A DNA stretch of 64,000 nucleotides from Pecten maximus. Lineage: Eukaryota. The stretch covers positions 17,732,001-17,796,000 of the forward strand of contig NC_047016.1 of assembly GCF_902652985.1 (NCBI RefSeq), in the 5' to 3' direction. The position numbers and the translations under genes were made by a program. Below the pieces are notes generated by a model. That model ran no database searches, was not told the DNA's origin, and worked only from the letters and a program-made list of their open reading frames with translations. This document shows positions 27,311-64,000 of this stretch, one piece after another. Position 1 is the first letter of the stretch. Every line of letters starts with the position of its first letter.

Positions 27311-29634
27311 AGTCTATTGCAGTAACACTGTAGCGCAAATGTAGATATATTATAGAGTATACCTCCGGTGATTTCTGATATTTCTAAACAGATTTAAAGT
27401 GTGTGGTTCGTAGCCCTATATTGCTACTTAGTAGTTTGGAACACCATAGCTGTCACGTATTTTGTAAAAAATAGTATGATTCGGTGTTTTGATTATATTG
27501 TAGGATTTCTTCATTGTTTGACTTGATTTTGTTATGATAAAGCCTACCTCCAAGCTCCTACTCAATATTAAGTTTCCCCGATTGTATATACAAAGGATAT
27601 ATATCAGTGTCTTCAGTAATACCAAATATATTTCACGAGTATGGCTAATATTTTAATATTTTTCAAAAGTGCGTAGACTTCTAGCACGATTGTAAAATAT
27701 CAGAATATTAGCCACATGATGTTATCATATACCATAACGATAAAATCAATCAGACATTGATGAAGCCCTATAATGTAATGGAAATATCAATCCATATAGT
27801 ATTGTGTAATTTTATGCCATATATGAAGTTATGGCGCTTACTGCATTAGAATATAATTACTATTTGTTACAAATCTCTCGATAAGATGACATTAGATATC
27901 AGACGTTAACAGAAGCATTGTAGGAAAGTGTCTACCTGTACCGTACTTATTGGAGTGACCTGTTTGATATATTTCACGAGATAAGATATTTAAGCTACAT
28001 ATGAATCATTGCTTTCTTATCAAGTTTCAAAGGTCAAGGCAGGTCAAGGCAAGTGATATAATTGGGTATAAAACGTGAAGTATAATCAAAAGCTTGGAGC
28101 AAACAGGTCGTGAAATGATACCGCTGTTAGTGCCGAGTTTATTAGGTAGGTGTACAACACAAGACGGACGGTAATGGCGTTAATCAATGACACTACCGCA
28201 GTTCCGTAATTTCTTATCATCATAATTAAAGCTATGCTGGCGTTGTTCATAACTACAAAGTTTTCCATATTTGTTAAAACAATTGATATTTTTGGAGAAC
28301 GTCTATTAGATGGTTTGATGGTTTGTTTCATTAAGTGTTAACGTGCCAGATAATAAATCACGTAAATCCTTGATATTTATGTGTTTATGCCCGACTTTAA
28401 TGCCCTTTTACAGCTGACACATCGGTGAATGTATATCGAAGCTACCCAGGAAACATTACTCATAAAGGTGACAAGCACGGTACACCTGAGCCTGGGAAAG
28501 AAAGAGGCTGTTAAGAGGAAAAATCACATGCCTTGATTTTAATCACGACAAAGCTTTTCTATGAACACATGTCTGTATCAACATGCTCCCCTGTGTATTA
28601 CAAATGCCAGTATGTAATAACAAACATACAAAATAAAATTATCCGATTTCAGAAGTGTCCCATTACCGTCGGGTGTATCTCTGAACGCCAACATTTTGAA
28701 TTTACCTGTAGGGCAGTTTGTTTTGATTGCGATTATAGTCTTTTCCCTAAAAGTAGTCTCAATGCCAACAGGTCATTTCCCTGTAAATGTTACCTGTTGA
28801 TACTACCTGTAGATGAAATTAAGGATTTATAATTAAATATCATATTTATATGCATATCAAAAATATTTATTTTATTTGATATCTAGTTTCAAATTTAAAA
28901 CGACAATACAATATTTTTGCTTGAAAATTATCTTTATGTTCAAAATTATGATTATATTTTATCTTATTTAAGTCTTAAACAATCATTTATACTCATTTTT
29001 AGAATATCTATACATTTGCATTTAGATAAATAAAATGGTTTAACTCTCTCGTTGCAACACTAATTTCCATATAGGCATATGGATATTTTGAATTAATTGA
29101 GTCTAATTTCACAACTTAAGAAAGTTTTGTTCTATATTGATGATAATATATACAGCTACATAAAAGTCTGCACAAACAGCAATATACCTGAAAATATAAC
29201 TTCCCAAAACTTGAAAGTTTCATTGTACAACCAGGTACACATTTAATAACTACTAATTACTACTTTGGTCGCATGTTATTGACTACCTCTCAATACAGGA
29301 CTTGAAAATTTGACAAATTACAAAGAGCGATATTCATCTTCTATGTCACCAGAGCTGCAAACTCTACACAGGCGTTCACTTATATCGACGAATTTCAATA
29401 TTCAGAGTATGTGCTGATAAATGTATTCTATTCAAAGCAATTATTGGTTGTTTTGGTATATATTAATATAGATAACGTTGTAGTGATATATAATCTACTA
29501 AATAATGTAAACATATCTTGTCGCGCATTGTCAATAAAAAAAATTAATACTAAAAAAGTATCTCAATGCAGTTCTTAGTACTAAATAGCTTTAATCAATA
29601 CTTAATTACATTATAATACTGGGTATACGCAATT

Positions 29635-40000: not shown

Positions 40001-43000
40001 TTTGGACTTAATCATATTTTTGATTTTGTTATTTTGACATACCACAAAGAAAAAAAAAATAAGTGTTTAAATGTTGGTAGCTATATTTACGTAATTTGAA
40101 GTATTTCTATATTGACATTTAGATTAAAAACGGATATATAGAACTTTTTCGAAATGCTAACATCCAATCACCATATATTCTAATTTACTCTCAATGATAT
40201 ATATTTTAGGTACATGTAATATAATATAGCTAGATAATTAATGAGATACTTCTCCTCCAGATATCCACACTTGAAGCCGAGTTGACAGGTATATACAGCA
40301 CTGGCAAGGTGTGTCTTCCGGAGTTCGGGAAGGGTTGCCTGTCACTGGAACCAGGTAAGAGCTTCCCTGTAACGGGATATTTTGTAAAATTGTCAATTTT
40401 ATTGGTACATGTTTTTGTTTTTAGAAAAGTCGATACTCTCTGTATGCAATAATAGGATTCCAATGTAGTAATTATTGTCTTAAAATAACAGAATTAATCA
40501 AATATTTGACATGTAAACCAATAGAGTCACGGTCGAATACTGAATAACAACGTATCACTGATTTACGTCACCACTCTAGGACGATTTTACTGATGCTAGG
40601 CTGAAGAAAGTGAACAAATCTAAGTGTTATCTTCTTCTTCTGAGAAAGGAAACATCATACAAGTCATCGCAGACGTAAATACACAGACGTAAGACCTGAA
40701 GTCCCGGATGTACCACTTCCCTTCTGTATTGACATTAATATTAATATCCAGTAGAATAACCATAACAATAATAACCAATAGCGAAAACAACCAAACGTAC
40801 TTACGTTTAAACACCAATAGCGAAAACAACCAGACGTACTTACGTTTAAACACCAATAGCGAAAACCACCAAACGTACTTACCTTTAAACACCAATAGCG
40901 AAAACAACCAAACGTACTTACGTTTAAACACCAATAGCGAAAACAACCAAACGTACTTACCTTTAAACACCAATAGCGAAAACCACCAAACGTACTTACC
41001 TTTAAACACCAATAGCGAAAACAACCAAACGTACTTACGTTTAAACACCATTAGTGAAAACAACCAAACGTACTTACCTTTAAACACCAATAGCGAAAAC
41101 AACCAAACGTACTTACGTTTAAACACCATTAGTGAAAACAACCAAACGTACTTACGTTTAAACACCAATAGCGAAAACAACCAGACGTACTTACGTTTAA
41201 ACACCAATAGCGAAAACAACCAAACGTACATAGTTTAAACACCAATAGCGAAAGCAACCAAACGCACTTACGTTTAAACACCAATAGCGAAAACAACCAA
41301 ACGTACTTACCTTTAAACACCAATAGCGAAAACAACCAAACGTACTTACGTTTAAACACCATTAGTGAAAACAACCAAACGTACTTACGTTTAAACACCA
41401 ATAGCGAAAACAACCAGACGTACTTACGTTTAAACACCAATAGCGAAAACAACCAAACGTACATACGTTTAAACACCAATAGCGAAAGCAACCAAACGTA
41501 CTTACGTTTAAACACCAATAGCGAAAACAACCAAACGTACATACGTTTAAACACCAATAGCGAAAACAACCAAACGTACTTACGTTTAAACACCAATAGC
41601 GAAAACAACCAAACGTACTTACGTTTAAACACCAATAGCGAAAACAACCAAACGTACTTACGTTTAAACACCAATAGCGAAAACAACCAAACGTACTTAC
41701 CTTTAAACACCAATAGCGAAAACAACCAAACGTACTTACGTTTAAACACCAATAGCGAAAACAACCAAACGTACTTACCTTTAAACACCAATAGCGAAAA
41801 CAACCAAACGTACTTACGTTTAAACACCAATAGCGAAAACAACCAAACGTACTTACGTTTAAACACCAATAGCGAAAACAACCAAACGTACTTACCTTTA
41901 AACACCAATAGCGAAAACAACCAAACGTACTTACGTTTAAACACCAATAGCGAAAACAACCAAACGTACATACGTTTAAACACCAATAGCGAAAACAACC
42001 AAACGTACTTACGTTTAAACACCAATAGCGAAAACAACCAAACGTACTTACGTTTAAACACCAATAGCGAAAACAACCAAACGTACTTACGTTTAAACAC
42101 CAATAGCGAAAACAACCAAACGTACTTACGTTTAAACACCAATAGCGAAAACAACCAAACGTACATACGTTTAAACACCAATAGCGAAAACAACCAAACG
42201 TACTTACGTTTAAACACCAATAGCGAAAACAACCAAACGTACTTACGTTTAAACACCAATAGCGAAAACAACCAAACGTACTTACGTTTAAACACCAATA
42301 GCGAAAACAACCAAACGTACTTACGTTTAAACACCAATAGCGAAAACAACCAAACGTACTTACGTTTAAACACCAATAGCGAAAACAACCAAACGTACTT
42401 ACGTTTAAACACCAATAGCGAAAACAACCAAACGTACTTACGTTTAAACACCAATAGCGAAAACAACCAAACGTACTTACGTTTAAACACCAATAGCGAA
42501 AACAACCAAACGTACTTACGTTTAAACACCAATAGCGAAAACAACCAAACGTACTTACGTTTAAACACCAATAGCGAAAACAACCAAACGTACTTACGTT
42601 TAAACACCAATAGCGAAAACAACCAAACGTACTTACGTTTAAACACCAATAGCGAAAACAACCAAACGTACTTACGTTTAAACACCAATAGCGAAAACAA
42701 CCAAACGTACATACGTTTAAACACCAATAGCGAAAACAACCAAACGTACTTACGTTTAAACACCAATAGCGAAAACAACCAAACGTACATACGTTTAAAC
42801 ACCAATAGCGAAAACAACCAAACGTACTTACGTTTAAACACCAATAGCGAACACAACCAAACGTACTTACGTTTAAACACCAGTAGCGAAATCAACCAAA
42901 CGTACTTACGTTTAAACACCAATAGCGAAAACAACCAAACGTACTTACGTTTAAACACCAATAGCGAAAACAACCAAACGTACTTACGTTTAAACACCAA

Positions 43001-46000
43001 TAGCGAAAACAACCAAACGTACATACGTTTAAACACCAATAGCGAAAACAACCAAACGTACTTACGTTTAAACACCAATAGCGAACACAACCAAACGTAC
43101 TTACGTTTAAACACCAGTAGCGAAATCAACCAAACGTACTTACGTTTAAACACCAATAGCGAAAACAACCAAACGTACTTACGTTTAAACACCAATAGCG
43201 AAAACAACCAAACGTACTTACGCTTAAACAACAATAGCGAAAACCAATAAACGTACTTACGAAAAGAATATAATAATCCTCCATGCACCTACGCAAGCGT
43301 AGGGCAATTTAGGAAATTTCATAAATGTTTTTGTATTGTATTTAGTATTTCTGTATTGTTATTATTATTAGAAAAGCGTAAGTTTGCGCCAGTTCTACAA
43401 TCGAAATCGTGACATAAGCAACAAGCTTGAAATAGCAAATGAAGTTATTCCAGGAAATCAATAGTGACGTTATACATTTTAAAATTTTATTAATAGAATT
43501 ATCAAATTCAGTCGAGACAATACAACTCTATCCGATACCAAGTATGTCGTTAATTAAGACACACCGCATTTATTAGTGTTACAATACATAGGTTATTCTC
43601 ATAGATATTTGTTAATAAAGTAGATGCAGTAAACAGGATGTTGCTTTCTTAAAAATCACAATAGGGAAATTCAAATTGAGTGAAAACATGCAGATTTTTT
43701 AAGATGATATCAAAAGGTCTGTATCGTCATTGATTAAACATTCAGGGGATGTATTCTATCACAGATACACTTTTTTGGTTATTTAAAGATAGCACGCCAT
43801 GACATGTCTGAGGAAAATAGGAATAAAAAAGATAATAATATTGTTTAAATGTTTATGATGTCGAGGTTTATATTAATTACCCTGCTGAAGATTTTGTTTT
43901 AGATTAAATGGAAATAACATCTTTTCTTGAAAGATTAATGCACTACCTTTAAAGACTCAACAGAAAAGTCTTTATGTTTTCCATTTTATTTTTATATCTT
44001 TTTTTATCTTGAGTATGCTATCAAAGCAATGAAAAGTCTTTGATTTTCATAACACCAGGGCTTACGGATTTGATGGCTGAAAGTAGGAACTATCAGGAAT
44101 TGGCAGCTGCGTGGAAAGGATGGCGTGACGCTTCAGGAAAGAAAATGAAATCGAAGTACACAGATTTTGTAAACGTCATGAACGAGGCCATCGCTTTCAG
44201 TGGTATGATGTGTACCAAATCCATATTTTTTAACAAGTTTGAATTTCGATATTATGTAGTGTATTGAATTGTGTAATACGTATACCGTACTACGATTTTC
44301 ATAGATTTGAAGTAAGTCAGTCTTGTTAGACTCCTTGGTATCAAAAGTATATAACTTGAATAGTTAAACGTGTGGATATTTCGTGAGTAAATCATTGTTG
44401 CTGGCTTCTTTTCGTGGAGAGCATCTCCTCTACTATACATGTTACAGAGTGGTTTGTCTCGGTCAGGGGACATAACTCCTTACAAGTTACAAGCTTCGAT
44501 TTGTCCCGGTAAGGGGAGAGAACCCACAACCTGTTACATGGCTTATTCTCAAATTAAAACCTAACACGGGACGGTAATAAAGGAGTAATTAACACGAAAG
44601 TGTGTTTAAAAAGAAGAACAAATCTTTTATAGTCACCTCTTACAATGGTGATATTCTTACGCTCTCCCTGCTGGGTAGCTATGATATCGAAAATAATGCT
44701 GACATGCAAACGATAAATAAAATTAATCCAAGTAATCAATAATGATATATATTTTGAGATTTTATTAATGCATGTAAATTTCAGTCGAGAAAATACAACT
44801 ACATCCGATACTGCGTATATCGTTAATTAAGGCACATCCACATTTGTTAGTGTTACAAATATTCTGATGGAACTTTTGTTTATATGTGTTTTGGAAATTG
44901 GTTTGTCATATAATACCGCTTGCTTTAACGATGACAAGACCATAATGAATAAAACAACATAGCAAAAAGTATTGAAGGGAAATATCACATAATTATATAA
45001 GTCAGTGTATACCCAAACAAAAATGAAAAAGTATCAGTTTTGAAGAATACATAGTAGACATTATATCACATGAAATGATTGACATGTTTTAGGTTACAAT
45101 GACACTGGAGAGTACTGGAGATCGTGGTATGAGACGCCTACTTTTGAGCAGGACGTCAAAAATCTGTATGAGCAGCTGCGTCCACTATATGAAAATCTAC
45201 ATGCCTATGTTCGCCGGAAGTTGATGAACAAATACGGGGCACAGTACTTCCCTGATAACGGACACATTCCCGCTCATTTGTTTGGTACAGTATTCTGCTT
45301 GTTGTTTTAAAAATGATTCTATAACACTACCAAACTGGTAAAACAATATCGATACCGGTTTTTCTTGCGCTTTCGGGACAAGTACAATCTAATTAAAATT
45401 AGACTTGTAATTTCCGCTCATCTACGATACACTGCAATACAAGATCTAACAACACCCCGTCGGAGGTCACCTCAGCATGACCCCTGAGCTCAGCCAATCA
45501 GCACGTCGCCTATACAATTTTCGGTGTGATTTCATTCTTCGGAAGTATACATACGTACGTAACGTTCCCGAGGTATCCCGATGGTCGATAGCAACGGTTA
45601 ACAATATGGCTTCGCCCAATCCACCTAACTGAGACCACCTCAAGCGAATTAATAGTTTTACAAACGTGTGCTGCCTGTGTGTATTTGTCCTTAATCGTAC
45701 GTGAGAGAGACAGCGAAGGCAGCAGTGTCGCGAAAAAAATAGTTTGAAAGGGAATAACGTGTACGATAACGGTTTTCGAAATCCAGTTGGCGACACAATC
45801 CGTCCTGTCGACAAGACAATGTATAATCGTTTTCTGTTCTTCTTTCAATGTAACGTCCAGAGGATTAGCAATTTGTTTTATTACCGTGACCATTAAGATA
45901 GTCTACCAATAATGTTTGTGAAATTTTGCGTATTTCAAATCGACGCTGAATTGAGGCGTTAATACTAAGGACACGCAACCGAAGGCTCGTATAAGACTGT

Positions 46001-49000
46001 TTGTCATTGGTTGACTTATGACGTCATTGACCAGTTTTCATTGACTTATATTGGAAGCTCAAAGGTAATGCTGAGATGACCTCGAACTGTGTGTTGTTAG
46101 ATCTTGTATTGCAGTGTATCATAGAGGAGCTGAAATTACAAGTCTAATTTTAATTAGATTAGGAACAAGTATTAACACAATCCTCATTGCATACCTACTG
46201 ACCAAGCTGATTAAAGCTAGAACAGTTTACGGGTTTTTATTGTGCTATGCGAACATTGAGTTCACTCCTTCACATAGCTATAGGAAGCGTGATCCCGGTG
46301 TGTATTAATAAACCATTGAGTTGACTCCTTCACACAGCTATATGAACCATTGAGTTGACTCCTCCACACAGCTATATGAACCATTGAGTTGACTCCTCCA
46401 CACAGCTATATGAAACATTGAGTTGACTCCTCCACACAACTATATGAACCATTGAGTTGACTCCTCCATACAGCTATATGAACCATTGAGTTGACTCCTC
46501 CACACAACTATATGAACCATTGAGTTGACTCCTCCACACAGCTATATGAACCATTGAGTTGACTCCTCCACACAGCTATAGGAAACGTGATCCCGGTGTG
46601 TATTAATTAACCATTGAGTTGACTCCTCCACATAGCTATATGAACCATTGAGTTGACTCCTCCACATAGCTATATAAACCATTGAGTTGACTCCTCCACA
46701 CAGCTATATGAACCATTGAGTCGACTCCTCCACACAGCTGTAGGAAACGTGATCCCGGTGTGTATTAATAAACCATTGAGTTGACTCCTCCACACAGCTA
46801 TATGAACCATTGAGTTGACTCCTCCACACAACTATATGAACCATTGAGTTGACTCCTCCACACAGCTCTATGAACCATTGAGTTGACTCCTCCACACAGC
46901 TATAGGAAACGTGATCCCGGTGTGTATTAATAAACCATTGAGTTGACTCCTCCACATAGCTATATGAACCATTGAGTTGACTCCTCCACACAGCTATATG
47001 AACCATTGAGTTGACTCCTCCACACAGCTATATGAACCATTGAGTTCACTCCTCCACTCAGCTATATGAACCATTGAATTGACTCCTCCACACAGCTATA
47101 TGAACCATTGAGTTGACTCCTCCACACAGCTATATGAACCATTGAGTTGACTCCTCCACACAGCTATATGAACCATTGAGTTGACTCCTCCACACAGCTA
47201 TATGAACCATTGAGTTGACTCCTCCACACAGCTATATGAACCATTGAGTTGACTCCTCCACACAGCTGTAGGAAACGTGATCCCGGTGTGTTTTAATAAA
47301 CCACTGAGTTCCGAACTAAGGACTGTTTAAAACGTTCATTAATGAGTGATCTACTCTTATCATTATAATTAATGAGCGATCTACTCTTATCATTATAATT
47401 AATGAGTGAGCTACTCTTATCATTATTATTAATGAGCGATCTACTCTTATCATTATAATTAATGAGCGAGCTACTCTTATCATTATAATTAATGAGCGAG
47501 CTACTCTTATCTTTATAATTAATGAGTGAGCTACTCTTATCATTATAATTAATGAGCGATCTACTCTTATCATTATAATTAATGAGCGAGCTACTCTTAT
47601 CATTATAATTAATGAGCGAGCTACTCTGATCTTTATAATTAATGAGTGAGCTACTCTTATCTTTATAATTAATGAGCGAGCTACTCTTATCTTTATAATT
47701 AATGAGCGAGCTACTCTTATCATTATAAACTCAACCCATGGATGTTAGTGATGATCAGTAAGCTGTCCTCAAACAGAATACCATTCCTTGTACCAAATAT
47801 GTTTTAATCCATTTGTATTTGTAGGCAACATGTGGTCACAAGAATGGGTTAATATATACGACCTAGTAGAACCTTACCCTGAGGCTACCAGCGTGGATAT
47901 TACAGCCAAGATGGTGGAAAAGGTAAAGGAATACTGGAATTGGGAGTCACTAGGAACTATGGACCGAAAGCGGTTTTCAATAAAAATAGGTTCTTAAAAG
48001 TCTAATAGATTGTGTATTGGTTTGATAAACGGGTTAATTACCGGGCTATTTAAACTTTATTTCATTCATATTCAACATTAAGAATAGAAAATAGAAGTAA
48101 TTTATATAAATCCGTTTTCCTCAGCTGTTAATAAAAGAAATATGTTACTCCGTTCGTAGACTGTTGTTACTCCATTCATAGACTGTTGTTACTGCATTCG
48201 TCGACTGATGTTACTCCATTCGTAGACTGTTGTTACTCAATTCGTAGACTGTTGTTACTCCATTCGTAGACTGATGGTACTACATTCATAGACTGTTGTT
48301 ACTGCATTCATAGACTGTTGTTACTGCATTCATAGACTGTTGTTACTGCATTCATAGACGTATGTTACTCCATTCATAGACTGTTGTTACTGCATTCGTA
48401 GACTGTTGTTACTCCATTCGTAGACTGTTGTTACTCCATTCATAGACTGTTGTTACTCCATTCGTAGACTGATGTTACTCCATTCATAGACGTATGTTAC
48501 TGCATTCATAGACTGTTGTTACTCCATTCGTAGACTGTTGTTACTCCATTCGTAGACTGTTGTTACTCCATTCGTAGACGTATGTTACTCCATTCGTAGA
48601 CTGTTGTTACTCCATTCGTAGACTGTTGTTACTCCATTCGTAGACTGTTGTTACTCCATTCGTAGACTGATGTTACTCCATTCATAGACTGATGTTACTC
48701 CATTCGTAGACTGTTGTTACTCCATTCGTAGACTGATGTTACTCCATTCGTAGACGGTTGTTACTCCATTCGTAGACTGTTGTTACTCCATTCGTAGACT
48801 GATGTTACTCCATTCATAGACTGATGTTACTCCATTCGTAGACTGTTACTCCATTCGTAGACTGATGTTACTCCATTCGTAGACGTATGTTACTCCATTC
48901 GTAGACTGTTGTTACTCCATTCGTAGACTGTTACTCCATTCGTAGACTGTTGTTACTCCATTCGTAGACTGTTGTTACTCCATTCGTAGACTGTTGTTAC

Positions 49001-52000
49001 TCCATTCGTAGACTGATGTTACTCCATTCGTAGACTGTTGCTACTGCATTCGTAGACTGTTGTTACTCCATTCGTAGACTGATGTTACTCCATTCGTAGA
49101 CTGTTGTTACTCCATTCGTAGACGTATGTTACCAAAGAAAGATAACTTGTACTTTAGATCTTTTAAACACAAATTAATCATTTGTTATTAAAGGTGCAAA
49201 TTTTCCGAAATATGTTCCCAAACCATTTCACCTAAAGTTCTTGTTGAGAATACCTCGAATTAAACCATATGTATGGATTTATCTATCTCAGATAATGGGT
49301 ATAGATAATTCTTATTCCGTAATTGAATATTGAAGCAAGAAGTATGGTGAAATCTTGTTAAATGTTCAAAATTTTCGTTTGATCAGGGCTATAATATAAC
49401 ACATATGTACCGAGTAGCGGAAGAGTTCTTCACATCAATTGGCCTTGACGCTATGCCGGAAGGGTTCTGGACAAAATCCATGCTCGAGAAACCGGCAGAC
49501 CGTGAAGTAGTGTGCCATGCCTCTGCATGGGATTTCTATGACGGCGAGGACTTCAGGTAAGTTTGTAAGTTTAAGAAAACTTTTCTGTCCTACCAAACCA
49601 CGATGTTACTATGTTAACGGTTCTTAAAAAAGCTATGTGAATCAATGGCCATATTACGCTACAGTTTGATAGATCTGTAATTGTGAAGCCGAAGCATCTC
49701 ATCTATAAGATAAGGAACACTTAACTCACAAGTTAAATTGCGAATTATTAAAAAATATTTTAGCCGTTTGTGCTGACAGATGAATTTAATGCATACCTTT
49801 TACCTAAATAAGGTTTAAACTCAGACTTATTCATATTTTAATTATTGATGATGTGTCGAAGCCATTACTAGTATTGATTGGAAGACATGCTTGTTTTAGG
49901 ATAAAACAGTGTACAGCAATTACAGCAGAGCAGCTACGTGTAGTTCACCACGAAATCGGTCACGTGATATATTATCTTGCATACAGGAAGTTACCACGTA
50001 TATTTAGAAAGGGTGCCAACCCAGGTATTATTTCACGGAGCAGAGTGAAGATGCATGTTTAAAAACACTGGCTTTTTGCGAAAATATATTTTTTGTTGTG
50101 GCGGGAAGGCCTTAAAACAAAATGGTTTCGGATGTCTTTTTTACTTAACTTGGGAACGTTAAGGCTTTATCTCGATCGGATGGATGGGTATAACAGGTTT
50201 TATCTTAGTGACTTCAGCTTATGTTTTTGTGTGTTTTGGCTCATAGAGAGCTATGCGGTGTGGGCAGGTCACCTTTCCAATACTGATGTAAGTCATATTG
50301 TATGATAGTGACCTTTCGCGTACGCATTTGTACAATATGTTATTAGGGAGTATATTGCGTGTTTGTGTATAAAGGACATCCTGGTAATATGTTTGAGCTG
50401 TATTGATTTGTAGGATCATCCACTGTACAACAATAACAGGTGTCGGTCTACTCACTATACATCACGAGATGGGGCACATTGTATATGACCAAGAGTATAA
50501 ACAGCAGCCTATGATTTACCGTGGGGGAGCCAACCCGGGTAACCGGACATACAACTTACATTTCTCGTTACAGAATTCAGTTCCTGGTTTCATTCTACCA
50601 CTCGGCATTTTTCTTGTTTCTGGTGTTGCTTTACAGCTGACATAATGCTGATTCTAGTGTTATTGATTCCCCTTTTTATATAAAAATATAAAACAAACTG
50701 AAAAAATAAATAAAAAAAGGATAATTTAATAAACATAAGATATACACTTTTTATATCGGTGAAGACACCGCATCAAATTCTAGTCTGAAATCAGATCTTA
50801 ATGTCATATGACGAGGAATGTGTATCTGTGTATCTATGTGAAAGGCATCATTCTAAAGGCATCAAATGTCTGCAGATGTCTGTTTACTAATTGGTCAAAT
50901 GGAACTAAAGAATACAAATTACAGTTTTTAAAACCACAGTAGTATGCCTGCAGTTGTGCTACATAAAACAAAAGAGTAGATATGTATTTGTCATTAACAT
51001 CTGTCAAAGTATATAACAAAGGCTTTAAAGTCTGTACTAGACTAACATGTTTTATCAGGACGTTAATGTTCACATAACACACAAATAGTTAATACAATCA
51101 AACGAAACTTAAAAAACAAGTAAAAATACACAAAAATATATATGTATATATAAATAAAATAATATTTATTATATTTGAAATAGGCCAAAGTTGATATATA
51201 TTTTATAATCGAGATTTCAAGGCCTGTTATCGAGAGCGGATTGTTTTGAAGAACATAATAATTTAAACTGTTCAAGCTGCAAACAGAATGTGACATGACA
51301 TACTCTCCCGTCATACAATGCAGAGTTGCTTCCCGTTAGTTGATGTTCAAATAAATCATTCCTCTGTTTACGTTATACGACTAGGAATGATATGATTGAT
51401 GTAACATTATACTGAAATCTTCAATACATAAGTGTCCTTCAGGTTTATTATACACTTCATATCATTACCGGAAAAAAATGACGAATTTTCTATTAATATC
51501 AATCTGAATAAGGTTGTATATTAATACACATTATTTTGTGTATCTGTGTTATGTCATGTTTTGTAATTTGATAATGCCTCTATACACACACGACTGCGTT
51601 TTATCATTTCTGCAGCATGTTGACCTACTTGACTACTAGATATGATCTTAGACTGTCAAATGTAATACACTACAAGTGTTTGCCTGTGTGGTAGTAGTTC
51701 ACGAATGTTTGTTGGCTAGGATGTTTTGACTTGAAATTATACAGAGACGTGTATAAACATGTTCCGAGTTGGAGGAAATGCATAATATAGCATGAATGTC
51801 GTAACCGAAACCCGTCGAAACGTTAAGATGAGAATAGGCGTAACACGTTTTTGATAATTGGGATTGTATGATTGTATGATTGTATGATGATTGTATGATT
51901 GTATGATTGTATGTACATGTGTAAACCTGAGCTGATATTGTTGTCTCCCTGATGCGTTTTCTAATGTATTTTAATTACATGAATTTAAGGGAGCGCAGAT

Positions 52001-55000
52001 CAATATTACATGTTAACAATATCCGTATTTGGCGACAACATCTCCGCTGTTTCAACATACCTGCAGAATAGAAGCAGTGTGTTTATAGATTTGCCCTTTT
52101 GCTGTTCTCGGGGAATGCTCGTCCTCGTGGAATTGATTATTCTCTTTCGTGTAGATTATTTGCGTCTTGATGAAGAGGGTGGATTGTCTCAAAAGTCGAC
52201 GATTTACTTGTCTGTACTGTCGTTATTACAACATTACCAATAATCTATTTCTATTAATATGCATCAAGCGAGCGTCTGGTTTTTTAGGATTGAGTACCTA
52301 TGCCATACCGTCGTTAATACTTACTAACCCCCTTCTCTATATACTAAATACATACATATTATGATAACTTCCACTGCCGAGAAACCTCTGAAAAATGTGG
52401 TCATTTTGCATTAATGATTAATAGTCCTACACGTAAATGTTAGTCGTGTGTTTTCTCTTCGGATGCGGACATCATAATATCAGAATAGCTCACAACTTTC
52501 CTATATACATTATATATATACAATTTTGTACTTATGTGAATACATTTTCTGTATACATCATTTAAAAATAGCAACACATGGGAACCTTTGATCAAAGTGC
52601 CCCCAGAATGCTGAGTCTTTCTTTGTAGGATCAAACAATGCACAACACTGACTGAGAGTCAACTTCTCACGGTTCACCACGAGATGGGACACGTTATCTA
52701 TTTTTTGGCCTACAACAACCAACCTGTTATTTATCGTGATGGAGCTAATCCTGGTAATTCAACACATCTTTCCAATATATTTAATATTCTCTCTTGCAAT
52801 AGGTGTGCATATCAGTATTTATCAAAAAAAGATATGCCCCACCAATGCTTTGAAATAAGTAAAATCGAGAGTTATGTATCATATATTTGTAGGATTAAAC
52901 AATGTACAACGGTAACAGAGAGTCAGCTTCTCACCGTTCATCATGAGATGGGGCATGTCATCTATTATCTAACTTACGCCAATCAGCCTGTTCTGTTTCG
53001 TAGGGGAGCAAACCCCGGTAATCCATTTACTATTTCTGTAGTAGAAATATGCCTGTTAGTGTAAATATTATATCTGTATATATATTAGATTAGATTATTT
53101 CTTCTTTCAGAAAGTCAAATATTAGAATCATAAAGTAATGTTATCCATTATATTATCAGATTTTCAGTGAGGAATAATAATCATTGCATCTTATAACATC
53201 TCTCTTTTATTTACATTTGTTTATAAATCTCTCGATTTATAAACAAATGTACATTCAAAGATGCATATTAATCGAATGCTTTCAAATAACTTTGTCTTAA
53301 TAACATATTAAAGAAAAAAACTAAACAAAAACAAAAAACAAAAAAACAACAAAAAACAAAAAAACCTCTTTACTACGATTGACGGTCACTATATACAAAC
53401 TACTATCATACAAATTTATCATACTGCTGTCTGTACCCTTTTTCGTTTTAAGCATGTTACGCATGGATATGGTTATTTACCTAATATAGTCGCATTGCTA
53501 GGCTACTTTACTTTCAAATTTGAAAATTGATGTTACCTAAGCATGTGGAATGATGTGTTGCATGATTATAAAAAATGAAGGTGTTGTGGGATTAGAAAAT
53601 CATTGAACATGTAACTATTTTTCATTGTATTTGTAATGGAATAATGAACAATACTTCATCTGAAATTAGGTATATCTAAAGATGCTAAACAATTTCTTAT
53701 ATGATAGATATTGCATTACATCAGAATGTCATAAACAATTGTTCTGGACATTAGTAAATATCTCTGAATATGATTTTTTGCGCAGTGAGATTTGAAGTAA
53801 ATGTTGATAATTCCCCATTCAGACGTCTGGTTTTAATAGCGTCAATGTGTAGAGGCATTTTATCGATCCGCTTCTAATCCAATATTCATGATATGATGCA
53901 ATGCCATTACAGGGTTTCACGAGGGAATGGCTGATATCGTCAGTTTGTCGTTTCAAACTCCCGAGCATATGAAGGCGATTGGCCTGTTGGATGAAATTCC
54001 TACTGATGACAGTAGGTATACCTACATTAGACGTGTCTGAAAATGTACTGAAATACTTTAAACAAACACAAAATATGTTTTTCTTGCACACAGAGAAAAC
54101 AATGAAAATTGAAACAGAAAGGTTAATAAAATTTCAAACGTTCTTGAGCTCAACGTAAAATATATGCATAAAAATCTGGCAATAGAAGAATTAATCGAGT
54201 TTTTCGTTTTTCTTTACCTCGTGTTTTTCTAGTTTTGTTTTATGCTAGATTTGTTTGTATACTGTCAATACGTTTTTATTTCAAATGCCATATCGGGTTT
54301 TTGAGTTAGTTATAAAGAAAGCTCGCTATTCTCATCAACCAAACTCACTTGCAGAGAGTGACCTGAACTTCCTGTTAAAGATGGCTCTAGACAAGGTTGC
54401 TTTCTTGCCGTTTGGCTACCTGATCGATCAATGGCGCTGGAGCGTGTTTAATGGGGCGACAACTCCAGCAACCTACAACCATGACTGGTGGGATCTCAGG
54501 TAAAGTTTACATTACCGGAATAACGAGTCAGCGATTTTCCTTTTATTTCAGCTTTATATTCATTATTCCCGATACACCCTACAAGCAAATTCACATTTTA
54601 AGATGCTGATAACCTGTGTGTCGTTGATCTGTGTGTTGTTAACTTGTGTGCTGTTAACCTGTGAGTTATTAATTTGTGTCGTTTACTTATCTGTTGTTAA
54701 CCTGTGTGTTATATCCTTTGTGTTAACCCGCGTGTTAGAATATCATTTGTGCTGTTAACCTGTGAATTGTTAACCTGTGTGTTGTTATCAACTGTGTGTT
54801 GTTAACCCGTGTGCTGTTAACGTGTGTAATGTAATAACATTTTTGTTGATATAACCTGTGTTGGTGACCTGTGTGTTGGTGACCTGTGTGTTGGTGACCA
54901 GTGTGTTGGTGACCTGTGTGTTGGTGACCTATGTGTTGGTGACCTGTGTGTTGGTGACCTGTGTGTTGGTGACCTATGTGCTGTTAACCTGCGAATTGTT

Positions 55001-57434
55001 AACCTGTGTGTTGGTGACCTGTGTATTGGTGACCTGTGTGTTGGTGACCTGTGTATTGGTGACCTGTGTGTTGCGGACCTGTGTGTTGGTGACCTGTGTA
55101 TTGGTGACCTGTGTGTTGGTGACCTGTGTATTGGTGACCAGTGTATTGGTGACCTGTGTATTGGTGACCTGTGTGTTGGTGACCTGTGTGTTGGTGACCT
55201 GTGTTGGTGACCAGTGTATTGGTGACCTGTGTATTGGCGACCTGTGTATTGGCGACCTGTGTGTTGGTGACCTGTGTGTTGGTGACCTGTGTTGGTGACC
55301 TGTGTGTTGGTGACCTGTGTATTGGTGACCTGTGTATTGGTGACCTGTGTGTTGGTGACCTGTGTGTTGGTGACCTGTGTTGGTGACCTGTGTGTTGGTG
55401 ACCTGTGTGTTGGTGACCTGTGTGTTGGTGACCTGTGTGTTGGTGACCTGTGTGTTGGTGACCTGTGTATTGGTGACCTGTGTATTGGTGACCTGTGTAT
55501 TGGTGACCTGTGTGTTGGTGACCTGTATTGGTGACCTGTGTGTTGGTGACCTATGTGCTGTTAACCTGCGAATTGTTAACCTGTGTGTTTATAGCTGTAT
55601 GTTGTAATAACATGTTTGTTGTTAAAACATGTGTGTTGGTGATCTGCGTGCTGGTGACCTGTGTGCTGTTAACCAGTGCGCCTTGTATGCCATGCTTAAA
55701 ATCTTAATGTTATTTAATTTTCGATATCAACTTTTAAAATAACAGTTAATTTTAGCATTATATTACCTGTTGCAGATGTAAATACCAAGGTATATCCCCT
55801 CCAGTGGAAAGGTCTGAGGATGATTTTGATCCTGGTGCAAAGTATCACATTCCTGGAAATACACCTTATATAAGGCAAGTCCGTCCTTTTAGGTGGCTAT
55901 GTAGCAGTGGCACGATTGTGCGTATTACTTAACCAAATACACAGTATTTTGAAGATGGACGATATAAGTGATACATAATATTGACATTGGAAACTAAAGG
56001 TTCATTTTCATTCTTGGTATTGTAATAAACATTCTCAAATAAATCTCCATGATATTTGGTGTATAAAGGTGTGAATACGTACGTAATGATAAACACAGCA
56101 CTCGCTTAGATTACAGTTATTTCTGGTAATAAAACCCCAGAAAACTTGGTATTCCAGTTTGATATCTTACAGTATAAATGCCCTACAGAAGCCTGTGGGT
56201 GGTACCGTCTCAAGATTGTAATACCTACACGTTATAGGTAGGGTAAGATTACGTGTTTTTTGTGAAGAAAAATCTAATCAGTGACATTATAGCACACTGA
56301 TACAAATGTAATGTTGCTGATTATATGATTTCCCCTCTTTGTACAGGTATTTTGTGAGTTACATTCTGCAGTTCCAGTGGCACAAGGCACTGTGTGACGA
56401 GATCGGATACGTCGGGCCACTACATAGATGTGACGTGTATCGTGACTCAGCTGCCGGGGATCTGTTGAGGTTAGTAATGATACAATACACAAAGTAATAT
56501 GTCACACATAGGTTAATAACACTAGCGTTATTTCCCATGGTCTTACGTCTACCGTATTGAATACTTGGGGGGACAAAGGTTATGACCAAATATTCCCGAA
56601 ACCTGTTATGTAAATCTATGTCGAATCCAGGTAGTAATGTCACGTTCTCGTAATTAGGACCAGCTTGTGAAAATGGGGCTAATAGGAATATCAACAAACA
56701 TCGAATACGTCTAAATTCGTATCGTACTGGAAAGTGTAATACTTTCCTGTGGGGTCAGGATATCAACGAAAGCCTACCCTTGTTAAAATAAACTATCGTT
56801 TCTGTAAGCACTGTTTTCCATCAGCTATTGGCATTTATAACGAAAACCATGCTTTTGTGATCATTCACTTGAAGATGGATTAAACTTGGATATGAAAAAT
56901 AGTATCTTTTACATGTAAGTTGTAAGCTTGCCCTTTAGGTAACGATTTAAGTAACCATCGAGTAACCGTCTGGTGTTGAAAAGTCTGTGATGTCCTAGCT
57001 TTCTAGTTTATACCTGATTCACATAGTCAAAAGGAGTTTGAAGAAAGCAAAGAAGCCCTTGCTAAAATATTTCATAATTTCTCTCCGGGTCAATAATTTT
57101 CAGGCAGATGTTCATGATTTCCCCTAATAATCTTCTTATACCATGTTTCAGAAATATGTTGATGTTGGGTTCATCAAAACCATGGCAGGAAGCAATGGAA
57201 GTGATTACGGGATCTCCTGAAATGAGTGTCCTTCCTATGGTGGAGTACTTTGATCCTCTGTTACAGTGGCTAAAGGAACAGAACAAGGAGGAGAACATTG
57301 GATGGAGCTCCATATGTCCAACAGATATCCCATCTCCCGATTCTCCTAGATCTGCATCAGGTTCCAGCAACATACATCCGACCGCTCTGCTTCTTGCCGG
57401 CCTAATTTTAGTTTTGGGAATAATTTTTTATTAG
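34097..57434 (+). CDS. ACE: Single-domain angiotensin-converting enzyme-like peptidyl-dipeptidase (peptidase M2), 642 aa, four alternative catalytic exons
   Basis: Exons 34097-34285, 39529-39696, 40261-40354, 44059-44202, 45093-45284, 47825-47922, 49387-49556, [one of 49900-50024 / 50414-50538 / 52629-52753 / 52893-53017], 53913-54011, 54355-54499, 55776-55874, 56347-56469, 57152-57434; total 1929 nt with consistent phases. ACE motifs: [36 protein letters not shown](M/I)[59 protein letters not shown]-terminal signal peptide and hydrophobic C-terminus. Confidence 0.97.
37720..38092. repeat. 12/16-bp low-complexity tandem repeat (ctcggtcact[ag]ctcg) running into the gap
   Basis: Read directly. 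Confidence 0.9.
38093..38454. other. Assembly gap (362 N) in ACE intron 1
   Basis: Run of N; exons 1 and 2 join in frame without needing sequence from the gap. Confidence 1.
38455..38730. repeat. Degenerate ~38-bp tandem repeat (acactgaaccgtcccagacgatgtttacactctat)
   Basis: About 7 diverged units. Confidence 0.8.
40773..43262. repeat. 39-bp minisatellite (accaatagcgaaaacaaccaaacgtacttacgtttaaac), ACE intron 3
   Basis: Highly homogeneous units; the 13-codon period explains the 719-aa - strand ORF. Confidence 0.98.
45385..46161. mobile_element. Non-autonomous TIR DNA transposon, probably AcademH-derived, in ACE intron 5
   Basis: ~95-bp imperfect TIRs (aatctaattaaaattagacttgtaatttc...), a 10-bp TSD with one mismatch (gggacaagta 45375-45384 / ggaacaagta 46162-46171), and an internal frameshifted RecQ-type helicase fragment [19 protein letters not shown] / [14 protein letters not shown] on the - strand. 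Confidence 0.8.
46251..47310. repeat. 34-bp minisatellite (aaccattgagttgactcctccacacagctatatg) with a recurring ~28-bp insert
   Basis: Insert ggaaacgtgatcccggtgtgtattaata at about 46282, 46581, 46743, 46905 and 47271. Confidence 0.95.
47338..47727. repeat. 30-bp minisatellite (aatgagcgagctactcttatcattataatt)
   Basis: 13 units read directly. Confidence 0.96.
48143..49132. repeat. 22-bp minisatellite (gttactccattcgtagactgtt), ACE intron 6
   Basis: Read directly. Confidence 0.96.
49900..50024 (+). CDS. ACE: ACE alternative catalytic exon 8a: (R)[41 protein letters not shown](G)
   Basis: 125 nt, ttttag acceptor, gtatta donor, phase 2 in and phase 1 out, intact HEXXH. Confidence 0.88.
50414..50538 (+). 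CDS. ACE: ACE alternative catalytic exon 8b: (R)[41 protein letters not shown](G)
   Basis: 125 nt, ttgtag acceptor, gtaacc donor, phase 2/1, intact HEMGH. Confidence 0.88.
52629..52753 (+). CDS. ACE: ACE alternative catalytic exon 8c: (R)[41 protein letters not shown](G)
   Basis: 125 nt, ttgtag acceptor, gtaatt donor, phase 2/1, intact HEMGH. Confidence 0.92.
52893..53017 (+). CDS. ACE: ACE alternative catalytic exon 8d: (R)[41 protein letters not shown](G)
   Basis: 125 nt, ttgtag acceptor, gtaatc donor, phase 2/1, intact HEMGH. Confidence 0.92.
53212..53251. other. Perfect 18-bp-stem hairpin downstream of the alternative exon cluster
   Basis: tacatttgtttataaatc-TCTC-gatttataaacaaatgta. 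The palindrome is certain; its function is unknown. Confidence 0.85.
54610..55675. repeat. 15-bp minisatellite (gacctgtgtgttggt) with degenerate flanks, ACE intron 10
   Basis: Core at about 54855-55550; explains the VTCVL and GDLCV ORFs. Confidence 0.95.
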
Positions 57435-61467: not shown

Positions 61468-62980
61468 CTATCCCATGGCGTGGATCAGGATAAAGGCTAC
61501 TGTCAAAACACTACACAATGGTGCTGGGGTTATTTCGGATGCAGAATCTGGTGTGTTCCCCGCCGTTTCAAACTTTGGACATTCAATATCCCAACCTACT
61601 TTGTGTCCACTATTTTGATTGGTCAGCCATTCCATTAAAGGTTGGAAATATTCAAGTAATGGAGTTGCACTCATCGTCTGTGTCCCCGTCAACACTTGCA
61701 TAGCTTCTGGCCAGGGACGAGATGCTCCGAGTTCCAACATCTCTCTATGGAAAAAAATACGCATAAACAGTTATGATATGGGCATATTGTGGAAGTCGTT
61801 TTAGATTATACCTTAAAACGTCAAAATTACGTCATAGAAAAAGTATGTGCTCTTGATGACATCAAACATTCTATACCTGATTAATACCTATATTCTAAGC
61901 TGCCATTAATACTGTGGATACATCAAAATATGTATGTAGCAATATAATAGATCTTTCATTGTGCATTATAAAACATTGAAAGCGTTTATGATACATCAAC
62001 TATATGTTTATTTGCCTTGTTGAAATCTTTAATAACAAGACCTAAACGTAAAGAAGACTATGTCAGAAAATTATAACGCTCATTCAATCACATAGGATGT
62101 GCATGTTTCCGCAATAAAGGAGATCAGTGCTTACTTCAGTTTTCTTCCGGACTGCGTGAGTCCTGTTATATCACATTTGTGTAGTGGTTTATCTTGTTGT
62201 TGTCCCATGCCGCACAAAGCTTTTTGCCATTGGAATTTCAAAATAGTGCTGACGAAATTTCTTTTGAGATAGAGAAAACATTGTCATTATCAATTATGGT
62301 ATATAATTAATGCAGTTTTTAAATGAACGGTATAAGACGATTTCGTACAGTCACGATACAAAACATTTTTTTTAAAACATTAAAGCTTGGACATTTTCAG
62401 AAGCCGCCTTAAAAGGATGATCTATCGTGGTCTTAATCTAACCTAAAACGACTCAGACGCAATTACTTAAAACGTCCATATAAAAATGAAACAATAGAAA
62501 TACAATGTTCAAACTATTATTGAATGACCTACAGGTACAATTACAAATACTGTATGTTTTATTATTTATCATAGAAAAATGGATATTTACTTGATATAAG
62601 GCTTGTTACCAGCAATTTGGTAAGCAGAAGCGATGTCAAGGTCCTCTTCTGTCCTCTTCACTGGGGGCGAAACGCCCTGATACTGACATCTTCGAAAAGA
62701 AGAAACATTAGATGAATTAGATCTATTTATTTGAAGGAATATATCTAAGCATATTTAGTCTTGTTAAATTATAATTTAATCTATTTCTTAGTTCTTCAGT
62801 TGCTTGTTTTTGTGTTTTAAGAAATGAGAGGTTACCGTAGTTTCCACCAATCGCGGTTGAAGGTGTTGCTAGGAGTTCTACCTTGGAACACATCCCACCG
62901 CCACTTATCAACAATGTAGTAAAAAGGAAGGGGTGCCACGTGCTCTAAAGCAAGCCTCATCATGTCATTTATATCAAGTT
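61468..62980 (-). CDS. 3' part of a second, divergent ACE-like gene (possible pseudo-peptidase); 5' exons lie beyond the window
   Basis: - strand exons 62980-62836 (LDINDMMRLALEHVAPLPFYYIVDKWRWDVF...WWKLR), 62689-62591 (CQYQGVSPPVKRTEEDLDIASAYQIAGNKPYIK), 62260-62135 (NFVSTILKFQWQKALC...PLHKCDI...GRKLK), 61744-61468 (EMLELGASRPWPEAM...LLEYFQPLMEWL...). Sizes 145/99/126 nt and phases match gene B exons 10-13; all introns GT-AG; no stops. Confidence 0.93.
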
Positions 62981-63474
62981 CTACAAGACAAAACAATTTA
63001 AATGTTTTAAAACATTACAGTAATGAGTACAGGACATGAACATGTTACCGGAAAGTATATGACACTTGGACTTCACAACTATTATTGTGCCGGAAACGGA
63101 CTGATTCATTCTCATACATAATATAGTCCATGTCCTTCTATCTAAATATTTGACTTATATACGCTTCGGAGTCACAATGTGATACAACATTCTCCTAAAT
63201 CACTCTTTGAGTATTCCTACATAATTGCTTAAGTTATAAGCCTTTCATTATTCCTATAGTACTCTGATAAATGTCATTTCATCACTTCACTCATCAACAA
63301 AGATGGGCCGAGTACAGAACGACATACACACCAGTTCCCATGTACAATATCAGATAGATACTAAATAACTACGATCAGAATTTCATCTCTCACACGTCAC
63401 AATTGGCCAAATAATAATTATCACAATGTTACAAATGCTCATGTTTGTTACAGTATATTATCATCAGATATAAG

Positions 63475-64000
63475 AACAAGAGACAAATCAGCCTGTTCAC
63501 TCACTTGTTTTTATGGCAACTTTGAAGATGAACATCTCCCTGGGCATCTTGCTAATTGAGAAAAATCGTTTAAAGATTTAATCTTATTTCACCCCTTTGC
63601 CTTTGAATATAGGTCATGGCCTTTTATTTGAGCAAAGTTGGTAGCCCTAAACCAAAGCCACAGGCACAGCATCAGGTTAATGGGCCTCAAGGATATTGAG
63701 AAGTAGTTTAAGGATGTTTAGCCTTTTTGACACCTGTCATCTTGAATGTATGTGAAAGTAATTTATTTGAACAAAATTGGTAGCCCTTTAACACCGCGTG
63801 TTTCAAACTCAATATCATCTTCCTGGGCCTCTTGCTATTTGAGAAAAAGTTGTTTTAAAGATTTTAGCCTATTTTACCCCATGTAACATTGAATATAGGT
63901 CAAAGTCATTTATTTTAACAAACTTTGTCACCTTTTCATCCCAATCAGGTCTCAGTGCCCCACAGGTATTCAAAAGAAGTTGTTTAAAGGAAAATGTTGA
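63475..64000. repeat. Diverged ~140-bp tandem units, probably the core of a satellite-bearing dispersed element
   Basis: Three recurrences of tttaaagatt..cctattt..ccc...ttgaatataggtca...tttatttgaacaaa.ttggtagccc. Confidence 0.6.

Follow-up and report, generated by a model that had tools for sequence, protein, structure and literature searches.

Why do animals keep two active sites of angiotensin-converting enzyme (ACE)? This question is long-standing, and the selectivity of the two human domains is among the best-mapped structure–function problems in peptidase pharmacology; two residues of the S2 subsite are those targeted by drug designers to separate N-domain from C-domain inhibition. The same residues are considered here in a stretch of 64,000 nucleotides from the scallop Pecten maximus (NC_047016.1, positions 17,732,001 to 17,796,000 of the forward strand, hereafter ‘the window’), in which an ACE-like gene carries four versions, called cassettes 8a to 8d, of the exon encoding its zinc site. 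A sequence-only reading of this stretch had proposed that 8c and 8d mirror the selectivity switch between the human C and N domains, and that splicing had thereby convergently recreated a functional split that vertebrates obtained by domain duplication. If a single-domain invertebrate ACE does toggle these residues by exon choice, it offers a natural experiment on the purpose of two pockets and makes the old question testable; in addition, published bivalve ACE work, such as the study of oyster fertility, may cover just one of several isoenzymes.

The reading favored here, with a probability of about 0.6, is that 8c and 8d specify isoenzymes that would differ in their P2 preference. Exon 8 encodes the zinc-binding HEXXH helix and the loop following it, and thus the S1′ wall and two residues of the S2 pocket. 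Each mRNA carries one of the four copies, and 8c and 8d, the best conserved of them, would give a constant scaffold two different S2 pockets. The 8d pocket, with Tyr and Arg, would offer a hydrogen-bond donor and a positive charge, like the human N domain, and the 8c pocket, with Phe and Asp, would be hydrophobic and negative, like the human C domain. Likely P2 preferences would then be acidic or polar residues for 8d and hydrophobic or basic residues for 8c. Cassette 8a, with Tyr/Lys and a different S1′ wall, is a third expressed form. This view is supported by human mutagenesis and crystal structures, which tie the two residues to P2-dependent selectivity (PMC2975193, PMC7148434, PMC7024173), and the change of pocket is likely to alter substrate or inhibitor preference.

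Four zinc-site cassettes in one gene

The ACE-like gene (peptidase family M2) extends over 34097–57431 on the + strand and comprises 13 exon positions, located by tblastn with RefSeq isoform X1 and other ACE proteins; the identity of its exons to isoform X1 (P0331) is 95–100% in the same searches. Its product consists of a signal peptide, a single catalytic domain and a C-terminal membrane anchor. Membership in M2 is indicated by phmmer, with E = 0 against human somatic ACE and ∼1e-215 against single domains, and the PF01401 domain is precomputed for the P. maximus RefSeq ACE-like isoforms.

Constant exon 7 (49387–49556, +), delimited by reading of the sequence and by contig joins to 8a and 8d, ends in ..GAC TTC AG, where the last two bases (AG) are the first two of an Arg codon completed by every cassette. 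The cassettes follow on the same strand at 49900–50024 (8a), 50414–50538 (8b), 52629–52753 (8c) and 52893–53017 (8d), and the span to which the sequence-only reading had referred, 52629–53017, has the first base of 8c and the last base of 8d as its exact limits. Each cassette is 125 nucleotides long, starts at the third base of the Arg codon, ends at the first base of a Gly codon and is bounded by a ..tag/G acceptor and a G/gta donor. Constant exon 9 (53913–54011, +) completes the Gly codon and contributes the third zinc ligand, the Glu in GFHEGMAD; it is followed by constant exon 10 (54355–54499, +), placed by tblastn and by a contig join from exon 9.

With tblastn, exactly four cassettes are found in the window, sharing 49–83% amino acid identity with one another and all retaining the zinc motif HHE(M/I)GH, which takes the form HEIGH in 8a. 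The whole assembly holds 10 HEXXH cassettes, the six outside the array being single cassettes in paralogous genes. Being adjacent, homologous, equal in length and phase and provided with their own splice sites, the four cassettes fit a tandem exon cluster.

Two predicted S2 pockets on one scaffold

Cassette 8c aligns without gaps to residues 345–386 (N domain) and 943–984 (C domain) of human somatic ACE, as well as to Drosophila AnCE, in phmmer searches of Protein Data Bank sequences; the human peptide used in the sequence-only reading is thus confirmed. Counted from I345, the position of human Y369/F391 is column 25 of the cassette and that of R381/E403 is column 37. The residues at these two columns are those originally assigned, namely Y/K in 8a, D/G in 8b, F/D in 8c and Y/R in 8d. 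In 8c, they are encoded by TTT (Phe, 52702–52704, +) and GAT (Asp, 52738–52740, +), and in 8d by TAT (Tyr, 52966–52968, +) and AGG (Arg, 53002–53004, +). By count, 8c and 8d indeed differ at just 7 of 41 residues (columns 7, 25, 27, 29, 34, 35 and 37), both S2 positions being among them.

In the human enzyme, Tyr369 and Arg381 of the N domain hydrogen-bond the P2 aspartate of the inhibitor RXP407, the C domain having Phe391 and Glu403 in their place (PMC2975193). Phe391 makes a contact with RXPA380, and a P2 lysine is attracted by Glu403 (PMC7024173). Furthermore, the Y369F/R381E double mutant shows lowered affinity for N-selective inhibitors (PMC7148434). These three papers agree with the earlier statement that the pair determines RXP407/RXPA380 selectivity.

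The fold of natural RefSeq isoform X2 was predicted with AlphaFold from a 44-sequence alignment, giving a predicted local distance difference test score (pLDDT) of 89 and a predicted template modeling score (pTM) of 0.87; the model speaks for fold and secondary-structure position, side-chain geometry being taken from homology. The cassette forms a short strand and the HEXXH helix (residues 361–379). Column 25 (residue 377) lies at the end of this helix, and column 37 (residue 389) in the loop before the helix bearing the third zinc ligand, where confidence is slightly lower. Compared with the human N domain, the model shows 51% identity and a template modeling (TM) score of 0.93–0.95; compared with testis ACE, the values are 50% and 0.95, with a root-mean-square deviation of 1.7 Å. 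The structural comparison suggested at the outset therefore upholds the fold and the placement of columns 25 and 37, but the constant scaffold is neither N-like nor C-like and is equally near both human domains.

The location of column 37 gives some room to another view, in which the isoforms differ mainly through opening and closing of the cleft at its hinge, through the S1′ wall or through stability, the S2 contrast being part of a broader helix–loop exchange. Human R381 lies on hinge region 3 of the N domain and influences lid movement, not always contacting the ligand (PMC7148434), and the loop of column 37 is the one modeled with slightly lower confidence; moreover, 8a has Arg-Val instead of Leu-Thr at the S1′/S2′ positions and HEIGH for HEMGH. 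However, the S1′/S2′ positions do not distinguish 8c from 8d, whose seven differences leave little else to carry a functional difference. For these two cassettes, this explanation is considered quite improbable, and a difference in P2 preference remains the preferred one.

One cassette per transcript

Automated annotation already includes three of the four splice forms. RefSeq proteins XP_033730615.1, XP_033730620.1 and XP_033730628.1 (P. maximus ACE-like isoforms X1, X2 and X3), reached together with other scallop RefSeq proteins by a protein search seeded with Mya arenaria ACE, carry 8d, 8c and 8a, respectively, at 41/41 identity, and differ nowhere but in residues 358–389. Cassette 8b, with intact frame, splice sites and HEXXH, is modeled in none of them.

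Transcript data were taken from RNA contigs of four public runs, from four studies, over 49300–54600. In one contig, 8a is linked to exon 7 on one side and to exon 9 on the other; another joins exon 7 to 8d, and a third joins 8c to exon 9 with a short side of 24 nucleotides; the join of exons 9 and 10 is seen twice. No cassette-to-cassette join occurs in the contigs of the four runs, and 8b has zero coverage in them. By these joins and the RefSeq isoforms, transcripts with 8a, 8c or 8d contain exactly one cassette.

A length of 125 nucleotides is not a multiple of three, so that inclusion of zero, two or three cassettes shifts the reading frame and only single-cassette mRNAs encode the enzyme. 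This frame shift could be the simplest way of enforcing exclusivity. The introns between the Pecten cassettes (139–2090 nucleotides) are long enough to be spliced, and therefore impose no steric block. Nor was convincing docking/selector RNA pairing found among the inverted repeats in 49558–53912, which are AT-rich, 70–95% complementary and not present as one per cassette.

Two further transcript signals were noted in the region. In all four runs, a contig passes from the last 546 nucleotides of the intron after 8d straight into exon 9 (53367–54011), with depths of 42, 19, 4 and 12, compared with 4–9 for the exon 7/exon 8 contigs. It begins just past an A-rich tract (53310–53366) and corresponds to a stretch that occurs once in the assembly. 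Transcription from an internal start, or intron retention, may account for this transcript; its first in-frame ATG, at 53927, would yield a protein lacking HEXXH. The second signal, in the intron between 8b and 8c (52196–52234), consists of ∼35 nucleotides over which very short contigs, running into unrelated sequence on both sides, reach a depth of 105, and probably stems from an abundant RNA or a repeat located elsewhere. Finally, the open reading frame running from 8c through the intron into 8d was used as a query for orthologous read-through frames, and was abandoned when the protein search returned mostly vertebrate N-domain-like fragments.

Conservation of the cassettes in scallops

Genomic exon 8 arrays were recovered from two further scallops, Argopecten and Mizuhopecten. 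The Pecten series (a Y/K, b D/G, c F/D, d Y/R) corresponds to a F/R, b F/G, c F/G and d Y/R in Argopecten, and to a Y/N, a second c-like copy with F/D, c F/D and d Y/R in Mizuhopecten. The Y/R pair is kept in the 8d-type cassette of four genera (Pecten, Mizuhopecten, Argopecten and Ylistrum), and Phe is kept in 8c of the three genera with genomic data. The earlier expectation that F/D and Y/R would be conserved in orthologous exons accordingly holds for Y/R in 8d and for Phe in 8c; it fails for the acidic partner of Phe, and both positions vary freely in 8a and 8b. The array is predicted to yield two pockets, one conserved and N-like with Tyr/Arg, the other with Phe and with an acidic second residue only in the Pecten/Mizuhopecten lineage.

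The cassettes also differ in the constraint acting on them, as measured by nonsynonymous to synonymous changes. Cassette 8d is the most strongly conserved, with ratios of 3:16 between Pecten and Argopecten and 1:18 between Pecten and Mizuhopecten; in the same order, the ratios are 5:13 and 5:9 for 8c and 10:13 and 11:7 for 8a. For 8b, the ratio is 15:14 between Pecten and Argopecten, and no orthologue was found in Mizuhopecten. The Argopecten b cassette is intact and its acceptor sequence is exactly that of Pecten 8b, which argues for 8b being an old, fast-evolving exon, of putative use in transcripts, rather than fresh debris.

In Mizuhopecten, the place of Pecten 8b is occupied by the second 8c-like copy. 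The two 8c-like cassettes (L020:20608–20732 and 28388–28512) are separated by 7.7 kb, with differences at 9 of 123 nucleotides (2 synonymous and 4 non-synonymous codons), and are the outcome of a recent duplication or gene conversion.

Recurrence in other lineages and the weight of chance

A contrast at both S2 columns is also found outside scallops, in pairs of otherwise very similar cassettes. Isoforms X1 and X2 of the oyster Ostrea edulis have F/G and Y/R with seven amino acid differences. In contig L012, termed oyster-like solely because it shares 37–38 of 39 masked columns with the O. edulis isoforms, two tandem cassettes separated by a 64-nucleotide intron have Y/R then F/G with four differences. 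Isoforms X1 and X2 of the gastropod Littorina saxatilis, from tandem cassettes with an intron of 1177 nucleotides, have F/G and Y/R with five. At the codon level, 17 synonymous and 7 non-synonymous differences separate scallop 8c from 8d, the corresponding numbers being 18 and 4 for the L012 pair and 15 and 5 for the Littorina pair. The scallop, L012 and Littorina pairs are thus long-lived copies under strong purifying selection, in which the retained changes include both S2 positions. Both columns differ as well in three more divergent tandem pairs, L017 (F/D then Y/S; termed lepidopteran-like solely from cassette similarity), L018 (T/T then Y/R) and P0007 (F/G then Y/R; a tandem known from protein sequence only).

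How often this would happen by chance was estimated from 282 distinct cassettes, using all non-isoform pairs that differ at 4–8 positions. Differences fall most often at column 37 (60% of close pairs), compared with 9–30% at column 25. Both columns differ in 21.7% of pairs with seven differences (n = 226 unrelated), in 5.6% of those with four and in 3.1% of those with five. The notable feature is that scallops, oysters and Littorina all show Y/R against F/(G or D). Assuming independence of the three lineages, this has a joint chance of ∼4e-4 to 1.5e-3 (baselines 0.217, 0.056–0.217 and 0.031). If they share an ancestral pair instead, that pair has been retained since before the bivalve–gastropod split, and either reading argues that both positions matter. 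An association between the two positions is seen across the family, since Arg at column 37 accompanies Tyr at column 25 (58 Y/R versus 7 F/R, odds ratio 7.3, Fisher 6e-8, over the 282 cassettes with kinship ignored).

Several results weigh against a difference in P2 preference and have to be set beside this recurrence. The scallop 8c/8d pair is by itself statistically unremarkable, with column 37 the most variable in the exon and column 25 a common two-state Y/F toggle. In other molluscs, a change at both positions is no general rule: Mytilus californianus isoforms (F/R and Y/R) differ at column 25 only, and Biomphalaria isoforms (Y/D and Y/T) and adjacent M. arenaria models (Y/S and Y/R, known from protein sequence only) differ at column 37 only. 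Phe is accompanied by Asp in Pecten and Mizuhopecten, by Gly in Argopecten, Ostrea and Littorina and by Arg in Mytilus, with Ala as a further partner among bivalves. In scallops, orthologues of 8a have Y/K, Y/N or F/R and those of 8b have D/G or F/G, and the S2 pairs of the scallop paralogues (F/R, Y/R, Q/D and F/K) show that the two residues are not obligately coupled. Other residues of the exon that distinguish the human domains, D354/E376, S357/V379 and T358/V380, correspond to columns 10, 13 and 14, which are Ser, Leu and Thr in 8c and 8d alike (Glu, Arg and Val in 8a). Human selectivity also requires S′ and distal residues (PMC7148434), and these either do not differ between 8c and 8d or are outside the cassette and hence shared by all isoforms. 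The cassettes do not reproduce the remainder of the human N/C signature. Lastly, the RNA contigs indicate presence only, abundance and rare double inclusions being beyond their reach.

Much of this variation is what would be expected if the cassettes were catalytically equivalent, the array being kept for regulation (splice choice by tissue or stage, or robustness) and the S2 differences being tolerated. The mutability of the two columns, the 22% of seven-difference pairs in which both are struck by chance, the drift of the 8a and 8b orthologues and of the Phe partner among scallops, and the free mixing of states in paralogues are all consistent with it. Yet equivalence accounts poorly for the invariance of Y/R in 8d across four scallop genera, with few amino acid relative to synonymous changes, for the difference at the same two columns in old and otherwise constrained oyster and Littorina pairs, and for the family-wide association of Tyr with Arg; besides, both residues measurably alter inhibitor affinity in human ACE (PMC2975193, PMC7148434). 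Equivalence is thus viewed as unlikely, and different P2 preferences of 8c and 8d as the better account. As for the idea that splicing recreates the functional split between N and C domains, what survives is the contrast in the S2 pair, the use of cassettes one at a time and the fixation of Y/R; what does not is the rest of the comparison, the other selectivity residues being the same in both cassettes and the acidic partner not being conserved.

A few related arrangements were encountered in the family. In L017 (L017:90–373), the two tandem HEXXH cassettes lie 34 nucleotides apart; this spacer is by itself too short for an intron, so that double inclusion is sterically blocked. Among named lepidopteran ACE proteins within one 90% cluster, matching alternative cassette types F/D, Y/G and Y/A occur. 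In the two-domain ACE model of Lingula anatina (P0187, 1325 amino acids), the zinc-site segments share 36/39 residues apart from the S2 columns, where they carry Y/R and D/G, the latter being the pair of scallop 8b. In the nemertean Lineus longissimus, ACE-like isoforms X1 and X2 (P0261 and P0372) are of equal length and differ at 15 residues, all in positions 122–145, and another ACE exon appears to be alternatively duplicated there. In isoform X2 of Papilio machaon ACE (P0201), the cassette reads HREMGH, the first zinc-ligand His being replaced by Arg.

One old pair or repeated origins

Whether the two-state pair arose repeatedly bears directly on the word ‘convergent’. Under either origin, the exon duplication is an event separate from the whole-domain duplication of vertebrates; a repeated origin as opposed to an old retained pair is left undecided by the tree. 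The maximum-likelihood tree, built on the 39 columns left after masking of columns 25 and 37, has support for 4 of 24 branches. It places 8a weakly with Mizuhopecten X2 and Mytilus X2, places 8b with the oyster cassettes and pairs the two Littorina cassettes. Because this 39-column tree does not resolve the relationships, convergence is inseparable from the long retention of one old pair.

It is plausible, at somewhat less than an even chance, that there was no convergent re-invention, and that a single exon duplication, older than the bivalve–gastropod split, gave rise to the Y/R and F/x cassettes, which have been kept since. Under such a single origin, the likeness of cassettes within a lineage would come from their fit to the same co-evolving scaffold or from old gene conversion. 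As a single origin would lead one to expect, the pair of states Y/R and F/G is common to Ostrea, Littorina and Argopecten, and synonymous sites indicate a great age for every close pair; scallops also have the 8a type, with its HEIGH and Leu-Pro motif, in common with mussels, and 31 of 41 residues of the Argopecten b cassette agree with the oyster F/G cassette. When columns 25 and 37 are masked, the scallop cassettes do cluster by type (8d and Mizuhopecten X4 match at 38/39), but the oyster, Littorina and Lingula pairs cluster by lineage, and for the Littorina pair this grouping has a support of 99/99. The order within arrays is likewise at odds with one origin, being F then Y/R (8c–8d) in scallops and Y/R then F in the oyster and Littorina; and the tree that would have to decide is built on 39 columns only.

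In a wider perspective, and tentatively, Tyr/Arg versus Phe/(Gly or Asp) may represent a two-state specificity module that selection maintains in protostome ACE, realized by alternative exons in molluscs (bivalves and a gastropod) and probably in Lepidoptera. With domain duplication in vertebrates, the same two-pocket solution would then have been reached repeatedly by different genetic routes. This generalization is more doubtful than probable.

Comparison with known systems

The closest parallel is human somatic ACE, which also has two catalytic sites of one fold with the S2 pair Tyr369/Arg381 versus Phe391/Glu403, matched by Tyr/Arg in scallop 8d and Phe/Asp in 8c. Unlike the human sites, those of the scallop are never in one protein, a single domain being made in alternative versions by exon choice; furthermore, 8c and 8d share the other N/C residues, and the acidic residue is usually Gly outside Pecten and Mizuhopecten.

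With regard to splicing, the array resembles known mutually exclusive tandem exons, such as PKM exons 9/10, sodium-channel exons 5a/5b and those of Dscam1 (reviewed in PMC9013439 and PMC9741552), in being made of homologous, tandem exons of equal length and phase, ancient and under purifying selection, with one exon used per transcript. It differs from them in belonging to an ACE gene and in swapping the zinc-binding helix itself, and no convincing docking/selector pairing was found in Pecten. In contrast to the Pecten array, the oyster-like (64 nucleotides) and lepidopteran-like (34 nucleotides) arrays have spacers between copies that are short enough to block double inclusion sterically.

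Concerning previous descriptions, the three RefSeq models cited above contain the same cassettes as an automated product, with no functional comment and with 8b missing. Oyster CgACE was characterized as a single-domain, membrane-anchored enzyme, active on angiotensin I, with an N-domain-like chloride dependence and a role in fertility (Riviere et al. 2011, PMC3235092). That paper deals with one form only and makes no mention of alternative exons or isoforms, whereas oysters do possess the switch, as seen in O. edulis RefSeq X1 (F/G) and X2 (Y/R). A full-text literature search found no paper on alternative zinc-site exons in any ACE.

Paralogues and repeats around the array

Five single-cassette ACE-like exons (L006–L010) lie on the − strand at C2:17796395–17874392, within ∼90 kb downstream of the gene, and form a paralogue cluster; a sixth single-cassette paralogue is located at C2:44.63 Mb. 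The nearest belongs to a second ACE-like gene, also on the − strand, which extends from ∼61500–64000 of the window to C2:17796395–17796517 (L009) and is arranged tail to tail with the array gene. The zinc-site exon of L009 reads HIQMGH instead of HHEMGH, and that of L010 reads HQEVGN. Zinc-ligand or catalytic residues are lost in both, which are therefore probably non-peptidase ACE-like proteins.

The introns of the array gene contain minisatellite arrays at 40620–43290, 46540–47010, 47316–47723 and 54600–55300, with long repetitive open frames on both strands, and a run of 362 N occurs near 38.1 kb.

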